From Blepharisma stoltei ATCC 30299 (lineage: Eukaryota; Protista; Ciliophora): DNA of 64,000 bases. A program made the position numbers and the translations under genes. Location of the stretch: assembly GCA_965603825.1 (NCBI GenBank), contig CBFDEM010000032.1, positions 186,001-250,000 on the forward strand, read 5' to 3'. Shown here in pieces: positions 13,001 to 26,739 of this stretch (the first letter of the stretch is position 1; every line of letters begins with the position of its first letter). The notes below the pieces were generated by a model that was given only the letters and a program-made list of their open reading frames with translations, was not told the DNA's origin and did no database searches.

Positions 13001-14310
13001 ATGATCTGTCTGAATGAACTTATTGTTCTGCATCAAGCATTGTGACTGATTCTAAAATAGGAATTTGGAATTTCGATGGACCTCCTCACATAGACAATTA
13101 TAATCTCTATGATACTGTCCAATTATTAATTTCAGCTGTAATAATTATTTAGGGACAAACTCTGATGGCTAAAATTGAAAGAAAAGTATCAATTATTGAT
13201 GAGGCTCAGTTTATTATAATTAATTGTTTAGGAACAGCTTATAATGCTGTTACAAATACGATAAAAGATTTAGGCAACTGCGAAGAAAGTAGAGTAAAAG
13301 AAAATGGAACAAAAATCACTCTACTTTTATTTTTTGGGATTTTAGCTGTGGGATGCTTTCATGCAATTTTGATCTATTATATTTATTTGATAAACAGAAA
13401 ATATAATGCATTTTGGAGTTTTGTACAGCAAATATCATCATTGTCATATATAGATTTACGAATGGCATGTGTAGACAGGCTCTCCAATGTTCATGGGATT
13501 GAGTATGATCTTATAGAGAATTCTGTGCGCATTCGATCACAAAAAGATAAGGCTGCAAAAATTCATACCAAAATCTATATAAAATTGATCCTTCACTTAT
13601 CAATTTTTTTTCTTATTGTTTTGTTTTACTTTTTATTCCAAAAATTTTATTTATATGATAAGTGTGAAAATCTAATGAAAAATCGCCCATATTTGATCGA
13701 AAATTTTTCTTACAGAAGAGCAACACTGTCAATGCTCTCACTTTTTTCTAGAGATACAAACACTCAAGAATACAAAAAATGATTTCCTCTTTCCTATGAT
13801 TTCACAAACTCGTGGAGCGAGTATAAGCAAGCATCTGAAATTCTCAAAAAAAAAGGCTTAGAAGCAAGGATTAGCAAATTTAAAATATTAATGTCTGATA
13901 AACTCAAAAAAAGAGTTTTTGAAGGCATAGACACTTATAATATGAAATTGCGTCTAGGAGATTTAGCTGCAACAAATTTAGTCTATTTTGATGCAGTTTA
14001 TATAGCTGCTGCTGCTCAGCAAATGAATACAGTTAATGATATCTGAAACTTTGTAGATAGTATTTATCAGCTACAAGTTGAGATGGGGATTGATTATCAA
14101 ATGGCCAGCGAAGACTCCAAAGATGCTATTAATTTGCAATTGTCCTATATTGTATATACTACGATTATGTTTTCAATTGTCCTAATTTCGCTGTATGTTT
14201 TTTATTATTTTCCTTTGCTGAGGCACGAAAAAATTGTATTAAAAAAGCTTCAAATTATGACGCAGATAATTCCATGCACAAATAATCATTTAAAAGATCT
14301 TACCATATAA
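10060..14310 (+). CDS. TmcB/TmcC-like membrane PAS-domain protein, copy 3 (~1406 aa; introns 12671-12685 and 13138-13152)
   Basis: ATG at 10060 is in frame with ORF pieces 10330, 10999, 11551, 11992, 12460, 13165 and 14083. Only TGA codons and two 15-nt introns interrupt. PAS: GIFLISVNQESFGLISYINEKAAQIL...FVPYPYSIGHDWF. Confidence 0.85.
12671..12685 (+). other. 15-nt intron GTATATTTTAAATAG
   Basis: GT..AG, A at position 10, contains the in-frame TAA that ends ORF 12460-12681. Confidence 0.88.
13138..13152 (+). other. 15-nt intron GTAATAATTATTTAG
   Basis: GT..AG, A at position 10, in-frame TAG. Confidence 0.9.
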
Positions 14311-14784
14311 ATTTTAACAAGTTGCTTAAATTTAAGTATTTTTATCAAAACTTATCAAAAAATTCGCCTGCTATAATTTTTAGAAGTGCAATTTAAGCTA
14401 TTAACTAAATTATTGACATTTTTGTTAAAATAAAATAATTCACAGGCTTCAGCACAAGAAATATGATAATAAATTCAATAAAATAAAAAATTTAATTCTC
14501 TCAGATATATTTTACTTTGTGAAGATTAAAATAATTAGCATTTAATGCTTAAGTGAATTTTAAATTTTATTTGACTCAAACTTTATCACTTTCTTAATTT
14601 GATTTTGATTTTTATGCTATAATTAAAAATTTTCAATTATAATTTCTTTGAAAATTACAAATTTTTGCTGGAATTGCTTGAAAATATTTATAAATGACAC
14701 AAATCCGCTTTAATTGCCAATTTCTCCTTCTATTTATATTTTGAACTTAAGACAAAAGAGCTAAGAAGTTCTAATATAATTAAA

Positions 14785-17700
14785 ATGCCTGAAGATAGCA
14801 AGATATTGGGAACCGAAACCACCGAAGTTTTTAACCTTAAAAAGTATCCAAGCACTAAAGAAGAAATAAAAATTTATGTCTTCAAAATTTTGGAAAAATT
14901 ATTTAAGGTAACATACAATACTAAAATGAAAAGAGCAAGACAGCAAATGCAGGAAATTATAATAAATTTTATAATTGCATTGCAGATGGCTACAATGATT
15001 TGGAGTCCCAATGTAAATATAAAAAACTGGGATCCAAATTTAGATACTTGGCAAATAATCAAATATGTCAGCTTCGAAAGAATATGTGGAGAGACTGGAA
15101 CACTTAATATATATTTCTATGTTACAGTCTTCGAAATATTACTTTGAATATTTTGCTTTATAGCACTTCTTTCATTTAGCTATTTTGAAACTACTCTCTC
15201 ATATTTCTATATTTTACTCCCAAAGAAAATTTTATGTTTCCTTACTTCTATAGGCTTTATACCTAGCCTGATGATTTTATTAGTAGTATTCAAATATTCC
15301 ACCTTTAATTACCACGAAATTTCTGAATATTCCAATAGTATTTCATCATACTATATTAATTATGGAAAACTTGTCGGATTTTTTTCAATTTTACTTGCTA
15401 TCATTTTACTGACAATTAATATTTTTTCAATAATATTTACGTCTGATATTAGGCATTCCTCTGCAAAAGTAAATATCAGATCAAGAGCTTTTTCGAAGCT
15501 TGAAATAGCTCAGCTTTTTTTTATGTTTTTTCAATGCATTTCTTATGTAATGCTGAATGAAAAATATTTTTTAATTAGTCAAGGATTTTTATTCATATAT
15601 GGATTTATTCTTGCTGAAAAAATTATTTCAGCACTTCCTTATTATAACCCCATTGAAAATGCAATAAAATCATGCCAAATTAGTGCAATATCAATATCTA
15701 TCTTAATTTTTCTATTTAGCGCATATTTGGACAATGGAGAAATTATTGCTATTTTAAACATATTTTTGCAGCCTTTTGCGCTAATTTTAGTATGTCTTAA
15801 AGTAAAATCAAACTCAGCTGCAAAAATTGAAGTAAATACTGACTTTATAAATCAATATGAATTTGAAAGAAAAATGAGACCAAAATTATGTAATGAATTA
15901 AAACATGATTTTAACGATTTAATAAATAAATTCTCTTATTTTAGCCAAAAAGCGAAATTTGAATATGATAAACTATTTGTATTATGAGAAGCTAATTATT
16001 GTTTTTATGTGCTCAAAAATGAACAGCTAACAAGGGTTAAATTAACAAAAATGAAAAATGCCAAAAATATTTTAGAAGGAGAAATCCAGCAATGGTTACT
16101 TATTAATAAGCTTGACAACAATAAAACTAATTCATCTGAAGTGAAGTTTTTAGAGTATTTAGACGAGTTAAACAGAGTAAAAACATATGATTTATCATTA
16201 TGCGAAAAATTGCTTGATGTGATCAATGAAATTTTATTAAAATCTCCAAAAATTGATAAATTAGTAAGCATGATTATTTTCTGGATGAACCAGCAGGTCT
16301 AAGGTATTTGAGGTCTTATGCAAGATGCACAGAAACAAAATGGGGCATGCTGCATTGATACAGGAAGAGATGATACAAGAGATCTTCAGTGCAAGCTTAG
16401 TTGATGAAGGATGAATTAATGCATGATGTGCTGGCACAGAGCACTGTAGACAAGTGGCATTGATACAAGAAAATGAAATGATAAAAGAATTGACAGTGCA
16501 AGATGATTCAATACAAATTGTGCTGGCACAGAACGAAGATTGCATGTGATGTACTAATAAGGGTGAAGCTGTAAGAGTGGCAACTATGCAAGGTATCATT
16601 CTGCAAAATGATATTAAGATAAGGTTTAACCTAGATTTCCTTATAAAGGTTTGACTAATAGTGATATGTTAAGTTGTTATTGTGGAATGATCTTAGCAAT
16701 TAATGCAATTATGAAGCAATATATATAATGAAAATTGAAAACTGCTTTATGAAATGGGACTTATTTATTTATCATGCTATAGATATGCAAGTTAGTATGG
16801 AAATGGTCATGAACATTTGATATTGATATTTTGTCTTGGCATGCACTGTTTGACTATAAGTGTAATTCTTTGAATTCAAGACATAAGTCATAAATTATAT
16901 TACATTCTATGTAAACTCGATTAATTTCATATACATGAAATTGTTTGAATGCTTAGGAAAAGCACATCATGAAGCTCACTATGTTTCACTTGTTTTATGA
17001 TTTATGGTTCAAAATGTAAACAAGAGTTGAAAAGTGAAATATAAAATTTCATATGAAAACAAAATTTAGCATGCTAAAATTATTTCGTGCGCCAAATTGA
17101 TGCTCAAATATAAGTTTAGTTTGCTAAAAATGTTTGACATGTGAGTTTTTATTTTCACGTGTCAAAATAATTTGCAATTCTGATCGGGATTCCATATTTA
17201 GTAAACAGATTTTCATGGTTTTTAACATTTTGGTAATTTATTATTTTATGTATGCTCAGCAGATCACATGGGCTCTATTAACGATGCAATCACATGCAAC
17301 AAATTTTCATAATAATCTTATTTCTGCAAGCACTTGCACAATCAATTATTATTATCTCATACTTTTCTAATAGATCAATGCCCTAAAATTAATATAAGCA
17401 TCACAAATATACTTTTAATATCACATTTGAAAGCATTCAATAGTGCATTATATGATCTGTAGGACTACCAAATTTTTTACCAATATTCAGCTGAAATCAA
17501 TATCAAAGCCATCGTTAAAATCGATTACATTGCATCTTTTTGACAGAAAAAGAAGCAACCGGCATTTCTCCATAAACGAATACTATAACACTGTTCTATC
17601 ATATCAGACAAGTGTTTAATACAATAAATGTTCAAATACCGCGAAACAATAAGACAACAGCAAATTATTCAAATTTTCGAAAACTGAAGCAATAAGAAGC

Positions 17701-20700
17701 AATTTTAGATGTATTACAACTCAATTAAGCATTACCAAGTATCTATCCACTGTTAGATGAGCTTAACATAAATACTTCATCCTGCCTCAACTAAGTTTGC
17801 ACTGAAGATCTCTTGTATCACCTCTATCTGTATCAATGCAGTCTGCCCCATTTTACTTCGGTGCATCTTGCACGAGATCTCAAATTCCTTGGACCTGTCG
17901 GCTTATCCAGAAAACACGCCTTATAGCGCTATTTAAAGTAAATTGCTATAGGAGGGTTTCTCAGGTCGATCTATAACCGTGCTCACGGTGTACTAAAGCA
18001 TCAGACGATGTCAATAAAATGAAAAACTTGTATGAGAAACTTGTAAGTAGCCACAAACAAATCTGTGGGATCGAGCTTTATGCGTCATTTTTGCAAAGTA
18101 TTTTTCATAATGATGACCTCAGTAATCTGATGCTACGAAAAATAGAAACCATAAAAATTAATGACTTTAAATCTGCAGCCTTTAGCGAACAAAATGGTAT
18201 TTTGCTTGTTTCAGTTGATTCTATATCATTTGGAGAAATCGTATATATAAATGACCCAGCTTTATATATACTAAAAACTTCAAGGCTTGATACTATAGGA
18301 AAATCTTTTACGAAATTTATACCTCTACAGTATAGACTTAACCACGATACATATATTCATGAATTCGTCCAAAACTGTACAAATCCTGATGTTACAAATC
18401 ATCATGATTTCTTCCTTGAAAATGACGAAGGATTTTTATTTGAATGCCAGCTAATAATAAGGTTCACTCCGATGTATAACAAGGTTTATATTTTAATTTC
18501 CATAAAGCCTCTCAACACTTCTAGGCAAATGGCTTTAATTAGCAATGAAGGCATTATTCAAAATCATACTAATAAATTTCCATATTTTGTAGGGTGTGAA
18601 GGGGCAAGTGCTAAGAACAGAAATATTTCTGAATTTATTTCAAATTTTAGCATGCACTCTATCAATACTTTGGAACCTAAAATTGAAATGGTTGACAACC
18701 ATGAAATCGCCTTAATCCATTCAGAAAAAATCATAAAAGACACTAAAATCCATACTTTTACAATAATTTATAGCGAAGATGATATGCATATCTGGAAAAG
18801 AGAAGCTAAGTCTCACCAAGTCATTTATCTCAATAACAACAATGACACGGACACTGCAGTTTACTACTGCAACTGGATGCCATCAATTAATCAAAAAATG
18901 TATGAAAATATTAAATCTGTCTTCAAGATAACTGGAAAATTGCCTCAAGTTCCTATAGAAAATAATGATAATATCGACGCCCCAAAGGACTCTCAAAAAA
19001 CCATAGAACATTTTTCGACCCCTAAAGACCTTCTAACTCCATTAAGCAAAGATAGATATAATTCTGCCTCAAACAGCCAATCGAATTCCGCTCAACGATT
19101 TGTTACAAAAGTGATCCAAGAATCAGAAAACCGTATAAAATTTTTCCAGTCTATCTTTTTCTTTTCAGTTTTAGCTGTCGCTTGCTCAAATATTGGGATT
19201 TTAATTTATATTTATGATGAAGTCGATCATACGAGCTCATTGAAAACTTTTGAGCATTTAGGAGAAATTTTATATTTAATAGTATCCTCTGCTGATTTTG
19301 TAGTATCGATAAGCTATCATGTGAAAAATGGGCAATTATCAAATTCAAGTAATGTCCTGAATTTTAACAGGACTATTTTGCAGTTGAATTCTTTAAAAGA
19401 TTCGATCAGAACTGATTATGCAGACTGAAGTTACTGCCAGAACTCTGATATTTCGATAAAACCTTTAATTCCTGTATGGAAATATGAAAATAATAATGAG
19501 CTGAAAATGGTTAACTTTTATGATGCCATACAAGAATTCATAATTAAAGGAAATGATTTTATATCAAAAGTAGAAACTAGCAGCGATAATTCTAATGAAA
19601 TGAAATTTATCATAAAAAACTCACTTGGATTCATGTATGAGTACTCAGATTCTGCATTAGAAGGACTAGTTAGCTGTGAAAAAGACCGTATAAGTGGCCA
19701 AGGAGCTAATATAGGTGCATTTTTAGGCCTTGGAGTCGGGATTATTACTCTATTCTTAGCTTTTTTAATCATCCAGATTCTCTCCATCAATAAAAGATAT
19801 CAGGCACTATGAGACACTGTTATGAAAGTAGCCCGACTTTTTGGCGTCGAAGAGAAATATATTTTAATTGAAAGGCTTGCAGAGGTACATGGAATTGACT
19901 ATGCCTCATTAGACAATAATTGCTCTTCTAAAAAAAGCCATGAGGACTATAAAAAATTGAGTTTTAAAGTATTATGAAGATATGCATGAAGGCTCTCAAT
20001 ATTTTTCCTTGTTTCTGTTACATTTTATTTGGTCATTTATTTTGTACTTTATGCTCATTGTGAAGAATTTATGGTGAGTAGGCCTGTGATTCTACAAACT
20101 TTTACCAAGCAAAGAGCTCTATTATCAAGAATGAGCCTTTTTGCAAGGGATATTAATATTCCTGTAAATGAGGGATTATTTGCAAGTAGTTATTCTTTTA
20201 AGAATCCAAAGACAGAATTAGTAAACTCAGCAAGCCTTTTGAACGATGAAATATTGAGTATGAGGGATTCTAGGATTTTAGATTTGGCATCTGAAGATCT
20301 AAAGAAGAGAATTTTTGAATACTCTGAAATTGATGTAGGGATATTAAAATATGGGACAATTTCAGCAACAAATTCAGTGATTTTTCAAGCTTTTAGCTTA
20401 GGGAGTGGACTAGATTCTTCTTCAGAGGCTGAAATCCATAATTTTATTTTGGACATATCACAAATCCAACAAGATGCTGATATTAATTTCGGATTAGCAA
20501 ATCATGAGTCAAAAAAAAAAATCGAAGATATTTTAGGCAATATCATTCAGATTACAATTGCCTATTCAGTCGGATCCATCCTCGTCTTTATCTGTTTTTA
20601 CTGGCCCTTTTTAATTTCCGAGAGAAAAATTCTCATAAAAATCCAGAATTTTACAATTATTTTGCCTGCAAAAATAATTTTTAACAAGAAAAAAGATATT

Positions 20701-20706
20701 ATATAA
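14785..20706 (+). CDS. TmcB/TmcC-like membrane PAS-domain protein, copy 4 (~1401 aa once insertion 16277-17992 is removed)
   Basis: Near-identical to copy 5. No TAA/TAG or frameshift outside the insertion. Excision leaving one TA gives ATG ATT ACT AAA GCA TCA GAC (MITKASD), colinear with MITHVSD in copy 5. Confidence 0.8.
16277..16415 (+). repeat. Left arm of 139-bp inverted repeat
   Basis: Aligns without gaps to the reverse complement of 17776-17914 with 20 mismatches (~86% identity, hand count). Confidence 0.93.
17776..17914 (-). repeat. Right (subterminal) arm of 139-bp inverted repeat
   Basis: Reverse complement begins TTTTCTGGATAAGCCGACAGGTCCAAGG versus left arm TTTTCTGGATGAACCAGCAGGTCTAAGG. 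Ends 76 bp inside the right TA. Confidence 0.93.
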
Positions 20707-20913: not shown

Positions 20914-21744
20914 ATATATAGATTTACGAATGGCATGTGTAGACAGGCTCTCGAATGTTCATGGGATTGAGTATGATCTTATAGAGAATTCTGTGCGCAT
21001 TCGATCGCAATAAGATAAAGCCGCAAAAATTCATACCAAAATCTATATAAAATTGATCCTTCACTTATCAATTTTTTTTCTTATTGTTTTGCTTTATTTT
21101 TTATTCCAAAAATTTTATTTTAATGATAAGTGTGAAGACCTTATGAAAATCGCCCATATTTGTTCAAAAATTTTTCTTACAGAAGAGCAACTCTGTCAAT
21201 GCTTTCTCTTTTTTTTCAAGAGATACAAATATTCAAGAATACAAAAAATGATTTTCTCTTTCCTATGATTTCACAAACTCTGAGGAGTATAAACAAGCAT
21301 CTGAAATTCTCATAAAAAAGACTTGGAAGCAAGGATTAGCAAGTTTAAAGTATTAATGTCTGATAAACTCAAAGAGATTTTTTTGAAGCATAGGCACTTA
21401 TAATATGAAATTGCGTCTAGGAGATTAGCTCCAACAAATTTAGTTTATTTTGGTGCAGTTTATATAGCTGCGGCTTACAGATGAACACAATTAATGATAT
21501 CCGAAACTTTGTAGATAGTATTTATCAGCTGCAAGCTGAGATGGAGATTGATTATCAAATGGCCAGCGAAGACCCCAAAGATGCTATCAATCTGCAATTG
21601 TCCTATATTGTGTATAATACAATTATGTTTGCAATCATCCTAGTTTTGTAGTATGATTTTTATTATTTGCTGAAGAGCTGTATTAAAAAGCTTTAAGTTA
21701 TGACGTTGGTAATTCCAATATTTAAAAGGTCTTATCATATATAG
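20914..21744 (+). pseudogene. Decayed 3' fragment of PAS gene copy 3
   Basis: Homologous to 13446-14310, with a nonsense change (AAA to TAA at 21011-21013), several 1-nt frameshifts (e.g. ATGAAAAATCGC to ATGAAAATCGC) and small deletions. No 5' portion. Confidence 0.9.
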
Positions 21745-22536
21745 ATTTAACAAGTTGCTTAAAATTAATATAAGTTCAGATTAAGTATTTTTTTCAAAAC
21801 TTATCAAGAAATTCGCTAATTGGCTTAAGCTATAACTTTTAAAAGTGCTATCTAAGCTATCAATTAAATTATTTAAATTTTGGTCTTAAATAAAATAATT
21901 CGCAGGCTTCAACACTAGAAATATGGTAATAATTATATAAAATAAAAAAAAGTTTTATCTCCCAGATATATTTTACTTTACGAAGATTAAAATAAGGAGC
22001 ATTTAATGTTTAAGCTTTATTTAACTTAAACTTTATTACTAACGTTAGATTGATTTTTGACTCTTATGATAAATAAAAATTCCAATTATAATTTATTTGA
22101 TAATTGCAGATTTTTGCTGGAATTGCAAGAAAATCAATATCAATAGTTGGTATAGCAATTCAAGCCTCTTCAATTGCCTTCCATTTATATTTTAACTCTG
22201 AGAGCTAAATTGGCTTTTACATATTTATTTATATAAAAATAGGTTAAGTAATTTTTTCTAGAACGCTAAATCAGTTATAAAACTCCTATTTCAAATTTCT
22301 GTTTGCACCATAGCTCAGCTCTTGAATTAATAGCTTCTATGGTTCAAGCTTGTCAGATATCAAAATTAACAAATTCTAGCTGGAATTCCAGATAAATTTT
22401 CATAACCATTTTAATTAATTTTATTTTATAAGTGACTGATTTCTAGTTAAGATAATTAAAGTATTAAAAAATGGAATTCTAGAATCGAGTATTTATTGAT
22501 TCATTTATGAGATTAAGAAGTTTTAATATAATTAAA

Positions 22537-25500
22537 ATGCCTGAAGATAGTAAAATATTGGAAACCGAAACTATTGAAGTTTTTAAACTTAAAAAGTATC
22601 TCAGCACTAAAGAAGAAATAAAGATAAATGCCTTCAAAATGTTGGAACAATTATTAAATATAGCATACAATGCTAAAATTAAAAGAGCAAGACAGCAAAT
22701 GCAGGAAATTATAATAAATTTTATAGTCGCATTGCAGATGGCCATAATGATTTGGAGTCCCAATGTAAGTATAAAAAACTGGGATCCAGATTTAGATACT
22801 TGGCAGACAATCAAATATGTCAGCTTCGAAAGAATATGTGGAGAGACTGGAACACTTAATATATATTTCTATATAACAGTCTTCGAAATATTGCTTTGCG
22901 TCTTTTGCTTTATAGCGCTTCTTTCGCTTAGCTATTTTGAAACTACTCTTTCATATTTCTATATTTTACTCCCAAAGAAAATTTTATGTTTCCTCACTTC
23001 CATAGGCTTTATACCTAGTATGATGATTTTATTAGTAGTATTCAAATATTCCACCTTTAATTACCACGAAATTTCTGAATATTCTAATAATATTTCATCA
23101 TACTATATTAATTATGGAAAACTTGTCGGATTTTTTTCAATTTTACTTGCTATCATTTTACTGACAATTAATATTTTTTCAATAATATTTACATCTGATA
23201 TAAGGCATTCCTTTGCAAAAGTAAATATCAGATCAAGAGCTTTTTCGAAGCTTGAAATAGCTCAGCTTTTTTTTATGTTTTTTCAATGCATTTCTTTTGT
23301 AATGCTGAATGAAAAATATGTTTTAATTAGTCAAGGATTTTTATTCATATATGGATTTATTCTTGCTAAAAAAATTATTTCAGCACTTCCTTATTATAAC
23401 CCCATTGAAAATGCAATAAAATCATGCCAAATTAGTGCAATATCAATATCTATCTTAATTTTTCTATTTAGCGCATATTTGGATAATGGAGAAATTATTG
23501 CTATTTTAAACGTATTTTTGCAACCTTTTGCGCTAATTTTAGTATGTCTTAAAGTAAAATCAAACTCAGCTGCAAAAATTGAAGTAAATACTGACTTTAT
23601 AAATCAATATGAATTTGAAAGAAAAATGAGACCAAAATTATGTAATGAATTAAAACATGATTTTAACGATTTAATAAATAAATTCTCTTATTTTAGCCAA
23701 AAAGCGAAATTTGAATATGATAAACTATTTGTATTATGAGAAGCTACTTATTGTTTTTATGTGCTCAAAAATGAACAGTTAGCAAGGGTTAAATTAACAA
23801 AAATGAAAAATGCCAAAAATACTTTAGAAGGAGAAATCCAGCAATGATTGCTTATTAATAAGCTTGACAACAATAAAACTAGTTCATTTGAAGTAAAATT
23901 TTTAGAGTATTTAGACGAGCTAAACAGAGTAAAAGCGTATAATTTATCATTATGCGAAAAATTGCTTGATGTGATCAATGAAATTTTATTAAAATCTCCC
24001 AAAATTGATAAATTAGTAAATATGATCACCCATGTATCAGACCAAATCAATAAAATGAGAAATTCGTATGAAAACCTTGTAAGTAGCCACAAACAAATCT
24101 GTGGGATCGAGCTTTATGCGTCATTTTTGCAAAATATTCTTCATAATGATGACCTCAGTAATCTTATGCTAAGAAAAATAGAAACCATAAAAATTAATGG
24201 CTTTAACTCTGCAGCTTTTAATGAACATAATGGAATCCTCCTTGTTTCAGTTGATTCTATATCATTTGGAGAAATCGTATATATAAATGACCCAGCTTTA
24301 TATATACTAAAAACTTCAAGGCTTGATACTATAGGAAAATCTTTTACGAAATTTATACCTCTACAGTATAGACTTAACCACGATACATATATTCATGAAT
24401 TCGTCCAAAACTGTACAAATCCTGATGTTACAAATCATCATGATTTCTTCCTTGAAAATGACGAAGGATTTTTATTTGAATGCCAGCTAATAATAAGGTT
24501 CACTCCGATGTATAACAAGGTTTATATTTTAATTTCCATAAAGTCTCTCAACACTTCTAGGCAAATGGCTTTAATTAGCAATGAAGGCATTATTCAAAAT
24601 CATACTAATAAATTTCCATATTTTTTAGGGTGTGAAGGGGCAAGTGCTAAGAACAGAAATATTTCTGAATTTATTTCAAATTTTAGTATGCACTCTATCA
24701 ATACTTTGGAACCTAAAATTGAAATGGTTGACAACCATGAAATCGCCTTAATCCATTCAGAAAAAATCATAAAAGACACTAAAATCCACACTTTTACAAT
24801 AATTTACAGTGAAGATGATATGCATATCTGGAAAAGTGAACCCAAATCTCACCAAGTCATTTATCTCAATAGCAGCAATGATACGGACACTGCAATTTAT
24901 TACTGCAATTGGATGCCATCAATTAATCAAAAAATGTATGAAAACATTAAATCTGTCTTCAAGTTAACTGAAAAATTGCCTCAAGTACCTATAGAAAATA
25001 ATGATAATATCGATGTCCCCAAAGACTCTCAAAAATTCGTAGAACATTTTTCGGCCCCTAAAGACCTTCTAACTCCATTAAGCAAAGATAGATCTAATTC
25101 TGCCTCAAACAGCCAATCGAATTCCGCTCAACGATTTGTTACAAAAGTGATCCAAGAATCAGAAAACCGTATAAAATTTTTCCAGTCTATCTTTTTCTTT
25201 TCAGTTTTAGCTGTCGCTTGCTCAAATATTGGGATTTTAATTTATATTTATGATGAAGTCGATCATACGAACTCATTGAAAACTTTTGAGCATTTAGGAG
25301 AAATTTTATATTTAATAGCATCCTCTGCTGATTTTGTAGTATCGATAAGCTATCATGTGAAAAATGGGCAATTATCAAATTCAAGTAATGTCCTGAATTT
25401 TAACAGGACTATTTTGCAGTTGAATTCTTTAAAAGATTCGATCAGAACTGATTATGCAGACTGAAGTTACTGCCAGAACTCTGATATTTCGATAAAACCT

Positions 25501-26739
25501 TTAATTCCTGTATGGAAATATGAAAATAATAATGAGCTGAAAATGGTTAACTTTTATGATGCCATACAAGAATTCATAATTAAAGGAAATGATTTTATAT
25601 CAAAAGTAGAAACTAGCAGCGATAATTCTAATGAAATGAAATTTATCATAAAAAACTCACTTGGATTCATGTATGAGTACTCAGATTCTGCATTAGAAGG
25701 ACTTGTTAGCTGTGAAAAAGACCGTATAAGTGGCCAAGGAGCTAATATAGGTGCATTTTTAGGCCTTGGAGTCGGGATTATTACTCTATTCTTAGCTTTT
25801 TTAATAATCCAGGTTCTTTCCATTAATAAAAGATATAAAGCACTATGAAATACTGTTATGAAAGTATCCCGATTATTTGGTGCCGAAGAGAAATATATTT
25901 TGATAGAAAGACTTGCAGAAGTCCATGGAATTGACTATGCCTCAATAGACAATAATTGCTCATCTAAAAAAAGCCATGAGGATTATGAAAAATTGAGTTT
26001 TAAAGTGTTATGAAGATATGCATGAAGGCTGTCGATGTTTTTCCTTGTTTCTGTGGCATTCTATTTGGTCATTTATTTTGCACTTTATGCTCGTTGTGAA
26101 GAATTTATGGTGAGTCGGCCTGTGATTCTACAAACTTTTACCAAGCAAAGAGCTCTATTATCAAGAATGAGCCTTTTCGCAAGAGATATTAATATTCCTG
26201 TAAATGAGGGGCTATTTGCAAGCAGTTATTCTTTTAAGAATCCAAAAACAGAATTAGTAAACTCAGCAAGCCTTTTAAACGATGAAATCTTGAATATGAG
26301 GGATTCTAGGATTTTAGACTTGGCTTCTGAAGATCTAAAGAAAAGAATTTTTGAATACTCTGAAATCGATGTAGGTATATTAAAATATGGGACAATATCA
26401 GCAATAAATTCAATGATTTTTCAAGCTTTTAGCTTGGGGAGCGGAATAGATTCTTCTTCAGAGGCTAAAATTAATTGTTTTACTTCTGGTATATCACAAA
26501 TACAACAAGATGCAGATATTAATTTTGGACTAGCAAATCAAGAGTCAAAAACAAAAATCGAAGGTATTTTAGGCAGTATCATTCAGATTACAATTGTCTA
26601 TTCAATTGGGTCCATCCTCGTTTTTATCTGTTTTTATTGGCCGTTTTTAATTTCCGAGAGAAAAATTCTGTTAAAAATTCAGAACTTTACAATTATTTTG
26701 CCTGCAAAAATAATTTTTGATAAGAAATTATTTAAATAA
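22537..26739 (+). CDS. TmcB/TmcC-like membrane PAS-domain protein, copy 5 (~1400 aa, no intron needed)
   Basis: ORF pieces 22507, 23848, 25543 and 26035 are one frame joined through TGA. ATG 22537 matches the copy 4 start MPEDSKIL. Confidence 0.88.

Follow-up and report, generated by a model that had tools for sequence, protein, structure and literature searches.

In the macronuclear (somatic) genome assembly of the ciliate Blepharisma stoltei ATCC 30299, the coding sequence of a large membrane protein, the fourth of a tandem family and called copy 4 here, is split by a 1.7-kb insert that lies between two TA dinucleotides. The insert was studied within the window, that is, the whole stretch of 64,000 nucleotides analysed, which spans C32:186001-250000 (contig 32 of the assembly). 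On balance, we favor the interpretation that a non-autonomous DNA element of 1.7 kb left here a very recent and non-canonical copy, which has been retained, and that its young age, not its excision, explains why the two halves of copy 4 are intact. The original prediction had instead regarded it as a candidate internal eliminated sequence (IES) of some antiquity, with the recent jump of an already diverged element as the alternative, and it is this alternative that is favored by the near-identity of the insert to a copy on contig 29.

That second copy carries much of the argument. All whole-genome searches covered the 41,464,486 bases in 64 contigs of the macronuclear (MAC) assembly, and the search with the insert returned one near-identical copy at C29:310431-312105, with two mismatches over 1675 bases (window positions 16654 and 17897). 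No further copies beyond these two were found in the MAC assembly with searches confined to the terminal inverted repeats (TIRs) or to the interior. The two copies differ by 0.12%, about 120-fold below the synonymous divergence (dS) of 0.147 between copy 4 and its paralog, copy 5. The insert is recent relative to the duplication of copies 4 and 5, and its recency would by itself lead one to expect both halves of copy 4 to be intact.

The published MAC genome of B. stoltei comprises 41 Mb in 64 telomere-to-telomere contigs, reads UGA as tryptophan and is virtually homozygous (PMC9942806). Telomere repeats (CCCTAACA) were found at contig ends, the G+C content of the window is about 30%, and TA makes up 8.9% of its dinucleotides. 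Long frames are open only if TGA is a sense codon, which was read as Trp throughout. Twelve sequencing runs from three studies were matched, all in the form of assembled contigs, and the contigs of four of them (X1, X9, X8 and X10) were aligned to positions 14700-20600 (5901 letters) at 98% likeness, so that copy 5 was kept off. The kinds of these runs (X8 and X10 RNA-like, X1 DNA-like) are guesses of the tool, and assembled contigs lose rare variants, so that minority forms escape them.

The insertion site and the age of the insert

When positions 16277-17992 are removed, the two halves of copy 4 join to ..KIDKLVSMI-TKASDDVNKM.., which is colinear with ..KIDKLVNMI-THVSDQINKM.. in copy 5 without an indel, and the direct repeat at the junction is exactly 2 bp, TA. 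The insert thus resembles an IES in having a short direct repeat at both ends and in restoring the frame upon exact removal, and the TA-bounded, in-frame arrangement described originally (16275-76 and 17991-92) is confirmed by the reading frames and by the alignment with copy 5. Copy 5 had also been taken to define the empty site. This holds for the colinear alignment; however, the homologous codons of copy 5 are ATG ATC ACC, and copy 5 itself carries no TA there.

With TGA as Trp, the coding sequence of copy 4 falls into two open frames (14623-16299, 17977-20703), whereas copy 5 is a single frame (22483-26736), and the two genes are 94.9% identical over 4219 nt. Neither half of copy 4 has an in-frame stop or a frameshift relative to copy 5, and its description as an otherwise intact gene was correct. 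As it stands, the N-terminal frame reads into the insert for eight codons and then meets TAA at 16300-16302, and the first in-frame start downstream of the insert is ATG 18019. The insert accordingly truncates the N-terminal half after eight foreign codons, while the C-terminal half would be translated at best from ATG 18019. Copy 4 would then be knocked out, a loss that may be tolerated through the redundant copy 5 (95% nucleotide identity).

Copies 4 and 5 were compared by the Nei-Gojobori method, the insert having been removed from copy 4 by a local script for the codon alignment. With a nonsynonymous divergence (dN) of 0.033, the dN/dS ratio (omega) is 0.23, and it is 0.26 and 0.21 for the two halves taken separately. 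When replacements were polarised with copies 1-3 as outgroup, six fell on the copy 4 lineage and eight on that of copy 5, and copy 4 has therefore not been drifting, as pseudogenes do, over any great part of its past. A local neutral yardstick is useful here. Between copies 4 and 5, positions 20914-22134 hold a duplicate, now decayed, of the end of copy 3 and of the spacer (13446-14685), which was copied by the same tandem duplication that made copies 4 and 5. At 83.8% identity to its source and with 26 gap openings, this duplicate does contrast with the intact halves of copy 4, as had been noticed, and its divergence of 16% agrees with the gene dS of 0.147. Decay of the copy 3 fragment has produced 0.22 indels per substitution. 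For the 4.2 kb of copy 4, about 2.5-5 neutral substitutions and about 0.7-1.4 disabling events are expected since the insertion by our arithmetic, and by the same arithmetic the probability that copy 4 is intact by chance is about 0.25-0.5. The intact halves had been taken as a sign of selection maintained through excision; with insert copies some 120 times younger than the duplication, they have no power to discriminate.

The insert had been judged old from the divergence of about 14% between its inverted-repeat arms. However, the arms of the contig-29 copy are as diverged from each other as those of the insert (85% match), and since that copy is otherwise 99.9% identical, the 14-15% divergence is a trait of the family rather than decay since insertion, which removes the ground for an old insert.

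The element and its displaced ends

No reading of the insert gives a long frame, and neither Pfam nor Rfam has a match in it. A coding or RNA function was rejected; one hit to mt-tmRNA (E 0.45) is far under the gathering score. The arms of the insert at 16277-16418 and 17773-17914 form a 142-nt inverted repeat that is 85% complementary. The complete element on contig 29 occupies C29:310392-312104 (about 1713 bp) and is intergenic, lying between open reading frames (ORFs). Its TIRs are about 180 nt long, imperfect, and bounded as TA-TAGC...GCTA-TA, which makes it look like an entire element flanked by a duplicated TA target. Tc1/mariner-type elements have TIRs at their very ends and a duplicated TA, an arrangement that is seen in the contig-29 copy and not in the window copy. 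The wider family is represented by the two MAC copies and a further flank described below; no coding capacity was found, nor, in the MAC assembly, a partner encoding a DDE transposase. A contig search with three ORF products (internal, left-junction and copy 4 C-terminal half) recorded no other element context, and a protein search with the first 150 amino acids after the junction returned no relatives, which is a blank rather than evidence. In runs X8 and X10, the left TIR region of the contig-29 copy together with the contig-29 flank has the highest depth of the aligned stretch (about 35), and the contig-29 copy may be transcribed. At window position 16858, short-read contigs of X1 and X8 are one base shorter than the reference, which may be a homopolymer error of the assembly inside the insert.

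The insert is an exact TA-to-TA segment whose ends differ from the transposon ends. By comparison with the contig-29 copy, its left end directly follows a TA (..GGAG-TA-TTTTCTGG..) that is set 37 nt into the left TIR, and the position of the right arm that is homologous to this internal TA reads TG. On the right, homology to contig 29 ends at 17950/51, and a contig of run X9 departs from the reference at the same point; because both break there, the true end of the element is 17950. The 76 bases between the inverted repeat and the right TA consequently divide into 36 that belong to the outer TIR and lack a counterpart on the left, and 40 that are foreign. Such a segment would not be yielded by a transposase acting on TIR ends.

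The X9 contig just mentioned is of low depth. It runs along window positions 17875-17950 and continues into 184 nt of new flank (CCTAATTACGGCAGG...) without a match in the MAC assembly. The family thus has at least one further copy, which probably lies in germline-limited DNA or in another strain.

By eye, the 40-nt extension resembles the TIR, a resemblance that was dismissed because, in local alignment with the element, the extension scores lower than shuffled controls do on average. Read on the reverse strand inward from the right TA, positions 17976-17992 (CACCGTGAGC..) share 9 of 11 bases with the TIR core of the Blepharisma transposon Bogo (..CTCCGTGAGCG..), a weak hint that the extension could be the end of a Bogo-like MITE (miniature inverted-repeat transposable element) or IES, for which the MAC assembly offers no Bogo copy as a comparison. 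Elsewhere on contig 32, in an ORF-free region at C32:339990-340011 (minus strand), a 37-nt stretch is 78% like the outer left TIR end; its last 16-17 nt are nearly exact, and it stops at GGAG-TA like the left boundary of the insert. This stretch could be a solo TIR stub from excision at that TA, the match being near chance level.

Retention in the macronucleus and competing explanations

An IES is present in the germline and removed from the soma, whereas the insert stands in the MAC assembly and its right junction is found in independent contigs. Record 11 of run X10 (521 nt, 17479-17999) covers the whole 40-nt extension as well as the right TA and continues into copy 4. Copy-4-specific contigs of X8 and X10 cover the right half with no mismatches at the 13-14 positions that separate copies 4 and 5. 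In X1, the contig covering the element is flanked as on contig 29, yet at both variable positions it agrees with the window, and both copies therefore feed this contig. A joint that skips the insert was absent from the contigs of X1, X9, X8 and X10, in which rare forms are lost. The expectation that an excised junction would be found is thus not supported: the RNA-like run X10 shows the retained right junction, and excision at a low level is possible. An intron was rejected as a reading of the insert, as introns of this species are 15-16 nt long (PMC9942806) and no RNA-like contig skips it.

Two further lines of contig evidence were set aside. Depth in X1 (161 for the two-copy element, against 62-121 for copy-4-specific contigs) hints at near-full retention and was given no weight, as the depth of a contig does not measure copy number. 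The contigs are uninterpretable as to whether the N-terminal half is expressed, since X8 and X10 have no cover there but the DNA-like X1 has a hole there as well. The X1 contig at 15231-16129 is a mosaic of copies 4 and 5 with five switches (13 copy 5 states and 8 copy 4 states), and cover of the left half therefore says nothing. This mosaic most likely arose when the contig builder popped bubbles between the paralogs; a third allele or gene conversion is a less likely cause. Among the contigs listed for the four runs, none bridges the left junction. At 17533, 19845 and 20136, X8 and X10 carry bases that are absent from copy 4, copy 5 and contig 29, which would agree with the presence of another strain, since ATCC 30299 and HT-IV were mixed in the published RNA time course. 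If the 17533 variant were phased with the right junction, the other strain would also have the insert; contigs built from 31-mers cannot phase them.

How such a copy might be retained can be outlined by analogy. Scan-RNA subtraction is the model for Paramecium and Tetrahymena, and under it a MAC-resident copy would shield homologous DNA from elimination. Duharcourt et al. in 1998 and Lepere et al. in 2008 reportedly found in Paramecium that a copy in the parental macronucleus blocks the elimination of homologous DNA, and maternal inhibition of this kind would predict that new insertions of a MAC-resident element, such as the one on contig 29, are retained. Retention may therefore be self-sustaining, with the near-identical contig-29 copy resident in the parental macronucleus, while the shifted ends would leave a transposase without a pair of TIR ends to cut.

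Several points weigh against a young, fully retained copy. All read evidence consists of assembled contigs, so the insert may be excised in a fraction of MAC copies; the labels of DNA and RNA runs are guessed, and the left junction is bridged by no contig shown. The evidence is confined to the somatic assembly and contigs, and the 99.9% identity of the copies could partly reflect gene conversion instead of age. Further, classical transposition fails to account for the displacement of the ends, by 37 nt into the left TIR and by 40-42 nt past the right one. Aberrant transposition is one possible origin of these shifted ends, and two others are among the explanations that follow.

A bona fide IES that is precisely removed from some or many somatic copies, leaving copy 4 functional with a dosage that varies with retention, appears unlikely but deserves consideration. 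It would fit the exact TA-TA bounds, the in-frame removal, the omega of 0.23 and the lack of excess changes in copy 4, and the MAC reference of B. stoltei is known to include 10,048 "cryptic IESs", whose retention has a median of 95%, along a continuum of excision (PMC9942856). However, no excised junction occurs in the contigs of four runs while the retained junction does in an RNA-like one, and the youth of the insert already accounts for the intactness that excision was to explain. We regard as slightly less probable that the insert is the leftover of a larger germline IES, in which an older, short IES in copy 4 took up a complete element at an internal TA and was then cut partially. In that case, a cut in the developing MAC from the host TA to the TIR-internal TA would remove the left part of the old IES along with the outer 37 nt of the TIR, and 1714 bases would remain. 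This would explain both odd ends together, namely the TIR-internal TA on the left and the 40 foreign bases on the right, the latter having no other match in the MAC assembly, as would be the case for germline-limited DNA; moreover, nested repeats in IESs and partial excision are known in B. stoltei (PMC9942856). On the other hand, no contig leaves the reference at 16276 in the aligned runs, although this counts for little since micronuclear (MIC) DNA is minor in the libraries.

The ends might also have been set by the IES excisase, if a TA-to-TA fragment was cut from a donor and re-inserted at the TA of copy 4, in the germline or in the early developing macronucleus. We find this doubtful. Ends 37 and 42 nt off the TIR ends that are nonetheless exactly TA-TA would be accounted for, as would the 40 foreign nucleotides, presumably donor flank, and the near-perfect identity to the other copy, and the possible solo TIR end on contig 32 that stops at GGAG-TA would suit it, although near chance level: the likeness is 78% over 37 nt, and control patterns also matched at three mismatches. 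No donor locus was found, and integration by a domesticated PiggyBac-type excisase is unreported in the papers compared here. Finally, a misplacement of the contig-29 repeat into copy 4 by the assembler is very improbable. The repeat has two copies and the left junction lacks a bridging contig among those shown, which would suit such an artefact, but the insert has its own 40-nt extension, two private bases and exact in-frame boundaries; an independent short-read contig covers 17479-17999, and the long reads of the assembly easily span a 1.7-kb repeat (PMC9942806).

Related ciliate elements and the host gene family

For B. stoltei, IESs numbering about 40,000 have been described, with nested repeats and with TA bounds in three quarters of cases, as well as two germline-limited transposon families; 8% of the somatic genome consists of interspersed repeats, somatic retroelements are partly excised, and excision is explicitly called a continuum (PMC9942856). 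Near-identical mobile IESs are also held by exons of Paramecium (Sellis et al. 2021, PMC8354472). Against this background, the present case belongs to a known landscape, and what is new is an unclassified element family and the offset ends.

The mobile IESs and the non-autonomous Tc1/mariner-derived IESs of Paramecium are like the insert in being TA-bounded, non-coding, multi-copy and located in exons, with exact removal restoring the gene, and their recent copies are near-identical (PMC8354472), as are the insert and its contig-29 sister. However, they are germline-limited and efficiently excised, whereas the insert is part of the somatic assembly and of transcript-like contigs and has ends off its TIR ends. 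Within Blepharisma itself, the MITIES Bogo/BogoMITE and BstTc1 share with it the species, TIRs, TA-containing duplications, a role as IESs and possible nesting (PMC9942856). By contrast, the TIRs of Bogo and BstTc1 are C-rich (CTCCCC.. and GTACCC..) with TAA/TTA or TATA duplications (PMC9942856), while the family of the insert ends in TAGCTAGAAATAT... Assignment of the insert to BogoMITE or BstTc1 was rejected on this mismatch of TIRs. The Bogo TIR core is absent from the MAC assembly, whereas the insert family has two copies there. The "cryptic IESs" of Blepharisma are likewise segments of the MAC reference, often TA-bound, but they peak at about 72 bp and are ordinary MAC-destined DNA; by definition, they are absent, with defined junctions, from a minority of MAC reads (PMC9942856). 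Mobile-element DNA is tolerated in the soma here too, but the partly excised Blepharisma cases are similar to long interspersed nuclear elements (LINE-like) (PMC9942856), while the insert is a 1.7-kb TIR element in a coding sequence with no excised form in contigs.

As read here, the locus gives a datable case of a known process, in which the soma tolerates a young mobile-element copy since a fresh paralog makes up for the loss, and it has value as a test locus owing to the exact empty site in copy 5, the complete sister element on contig 29 and its odd ends. It bears on models of how transposons become IESs (PMC9942856), through the possible non-elimination of MAC-resident elements, partial IESs via alternative TAs, or re-insertion of excisase fragments. 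Should the excisase have set the ends, with a TA-to-TA segment about 40 nt off the TIRs pasted along with donor flank into a TA of the gene, which we consider improbable, it would be shown directly that the domesticated machinery of excision is still able to mobilise DNA and to give rise to new IES-like inserts.

The host gene belongs to a tandem family at 970-26739 of five large multi-pass membrane proteins with TPR_TmcB and PAS domains. Copies 1-3 share about 30% protein identity with copies 4 and 5, and weaker relatives occur on contig 17. In the host protein, the insertion site falls within the TPR_TmcB match (PF25474, E 1e-8), and just downstream of it the C-terminal half of copy 4 has a weak match to PAS_9. 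The features of the locus are listed in Table 1.

Table 1. Parts of the insert and of the host genes, in window coordinates.
Feature	Position	Strand	Basis or remark
Copy 4, N-terminal half	14785..16276	+	ATG 14785; 91% amino acid identity to copy 5 residues 10-521
Left TA	16275..16276	.	One copy of the 2-bp direct repeat; matches internal TA of the contig-29 element
Left TIR arm, outer ~37 nt lost	16277..16418	+	Inverted-repeat and contig-29 comparison
Sub-repeats tied to left TIR arm	16405-16440 / 16497-16532; 16352-16366 / 16457-16471		
Element interior, non-coding	16419..17772	.	No Pfam/Rfam match
Right TIR arm, complete, ~178 nt, ending ..GCTATA	17773..17950	-	Homology to contig-29 and X9 copies stops here
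Foreign extension, 40 nt	17951..17990	.	Unique in the 41.5-Mb assembly; palindrome CCGTG-CT-CACGG
Right TA	17991..17992	.	Second copy of the 2-bp direct repeat
Copy 4, C-terminal half	17992..20706	+	T K A S D D...; TAA 20704-06; 94% match to copy 5 residues 516-1415
Copy 5, uninterrupted paralog	22537..26739	+	Empty site at codons 24019-24042

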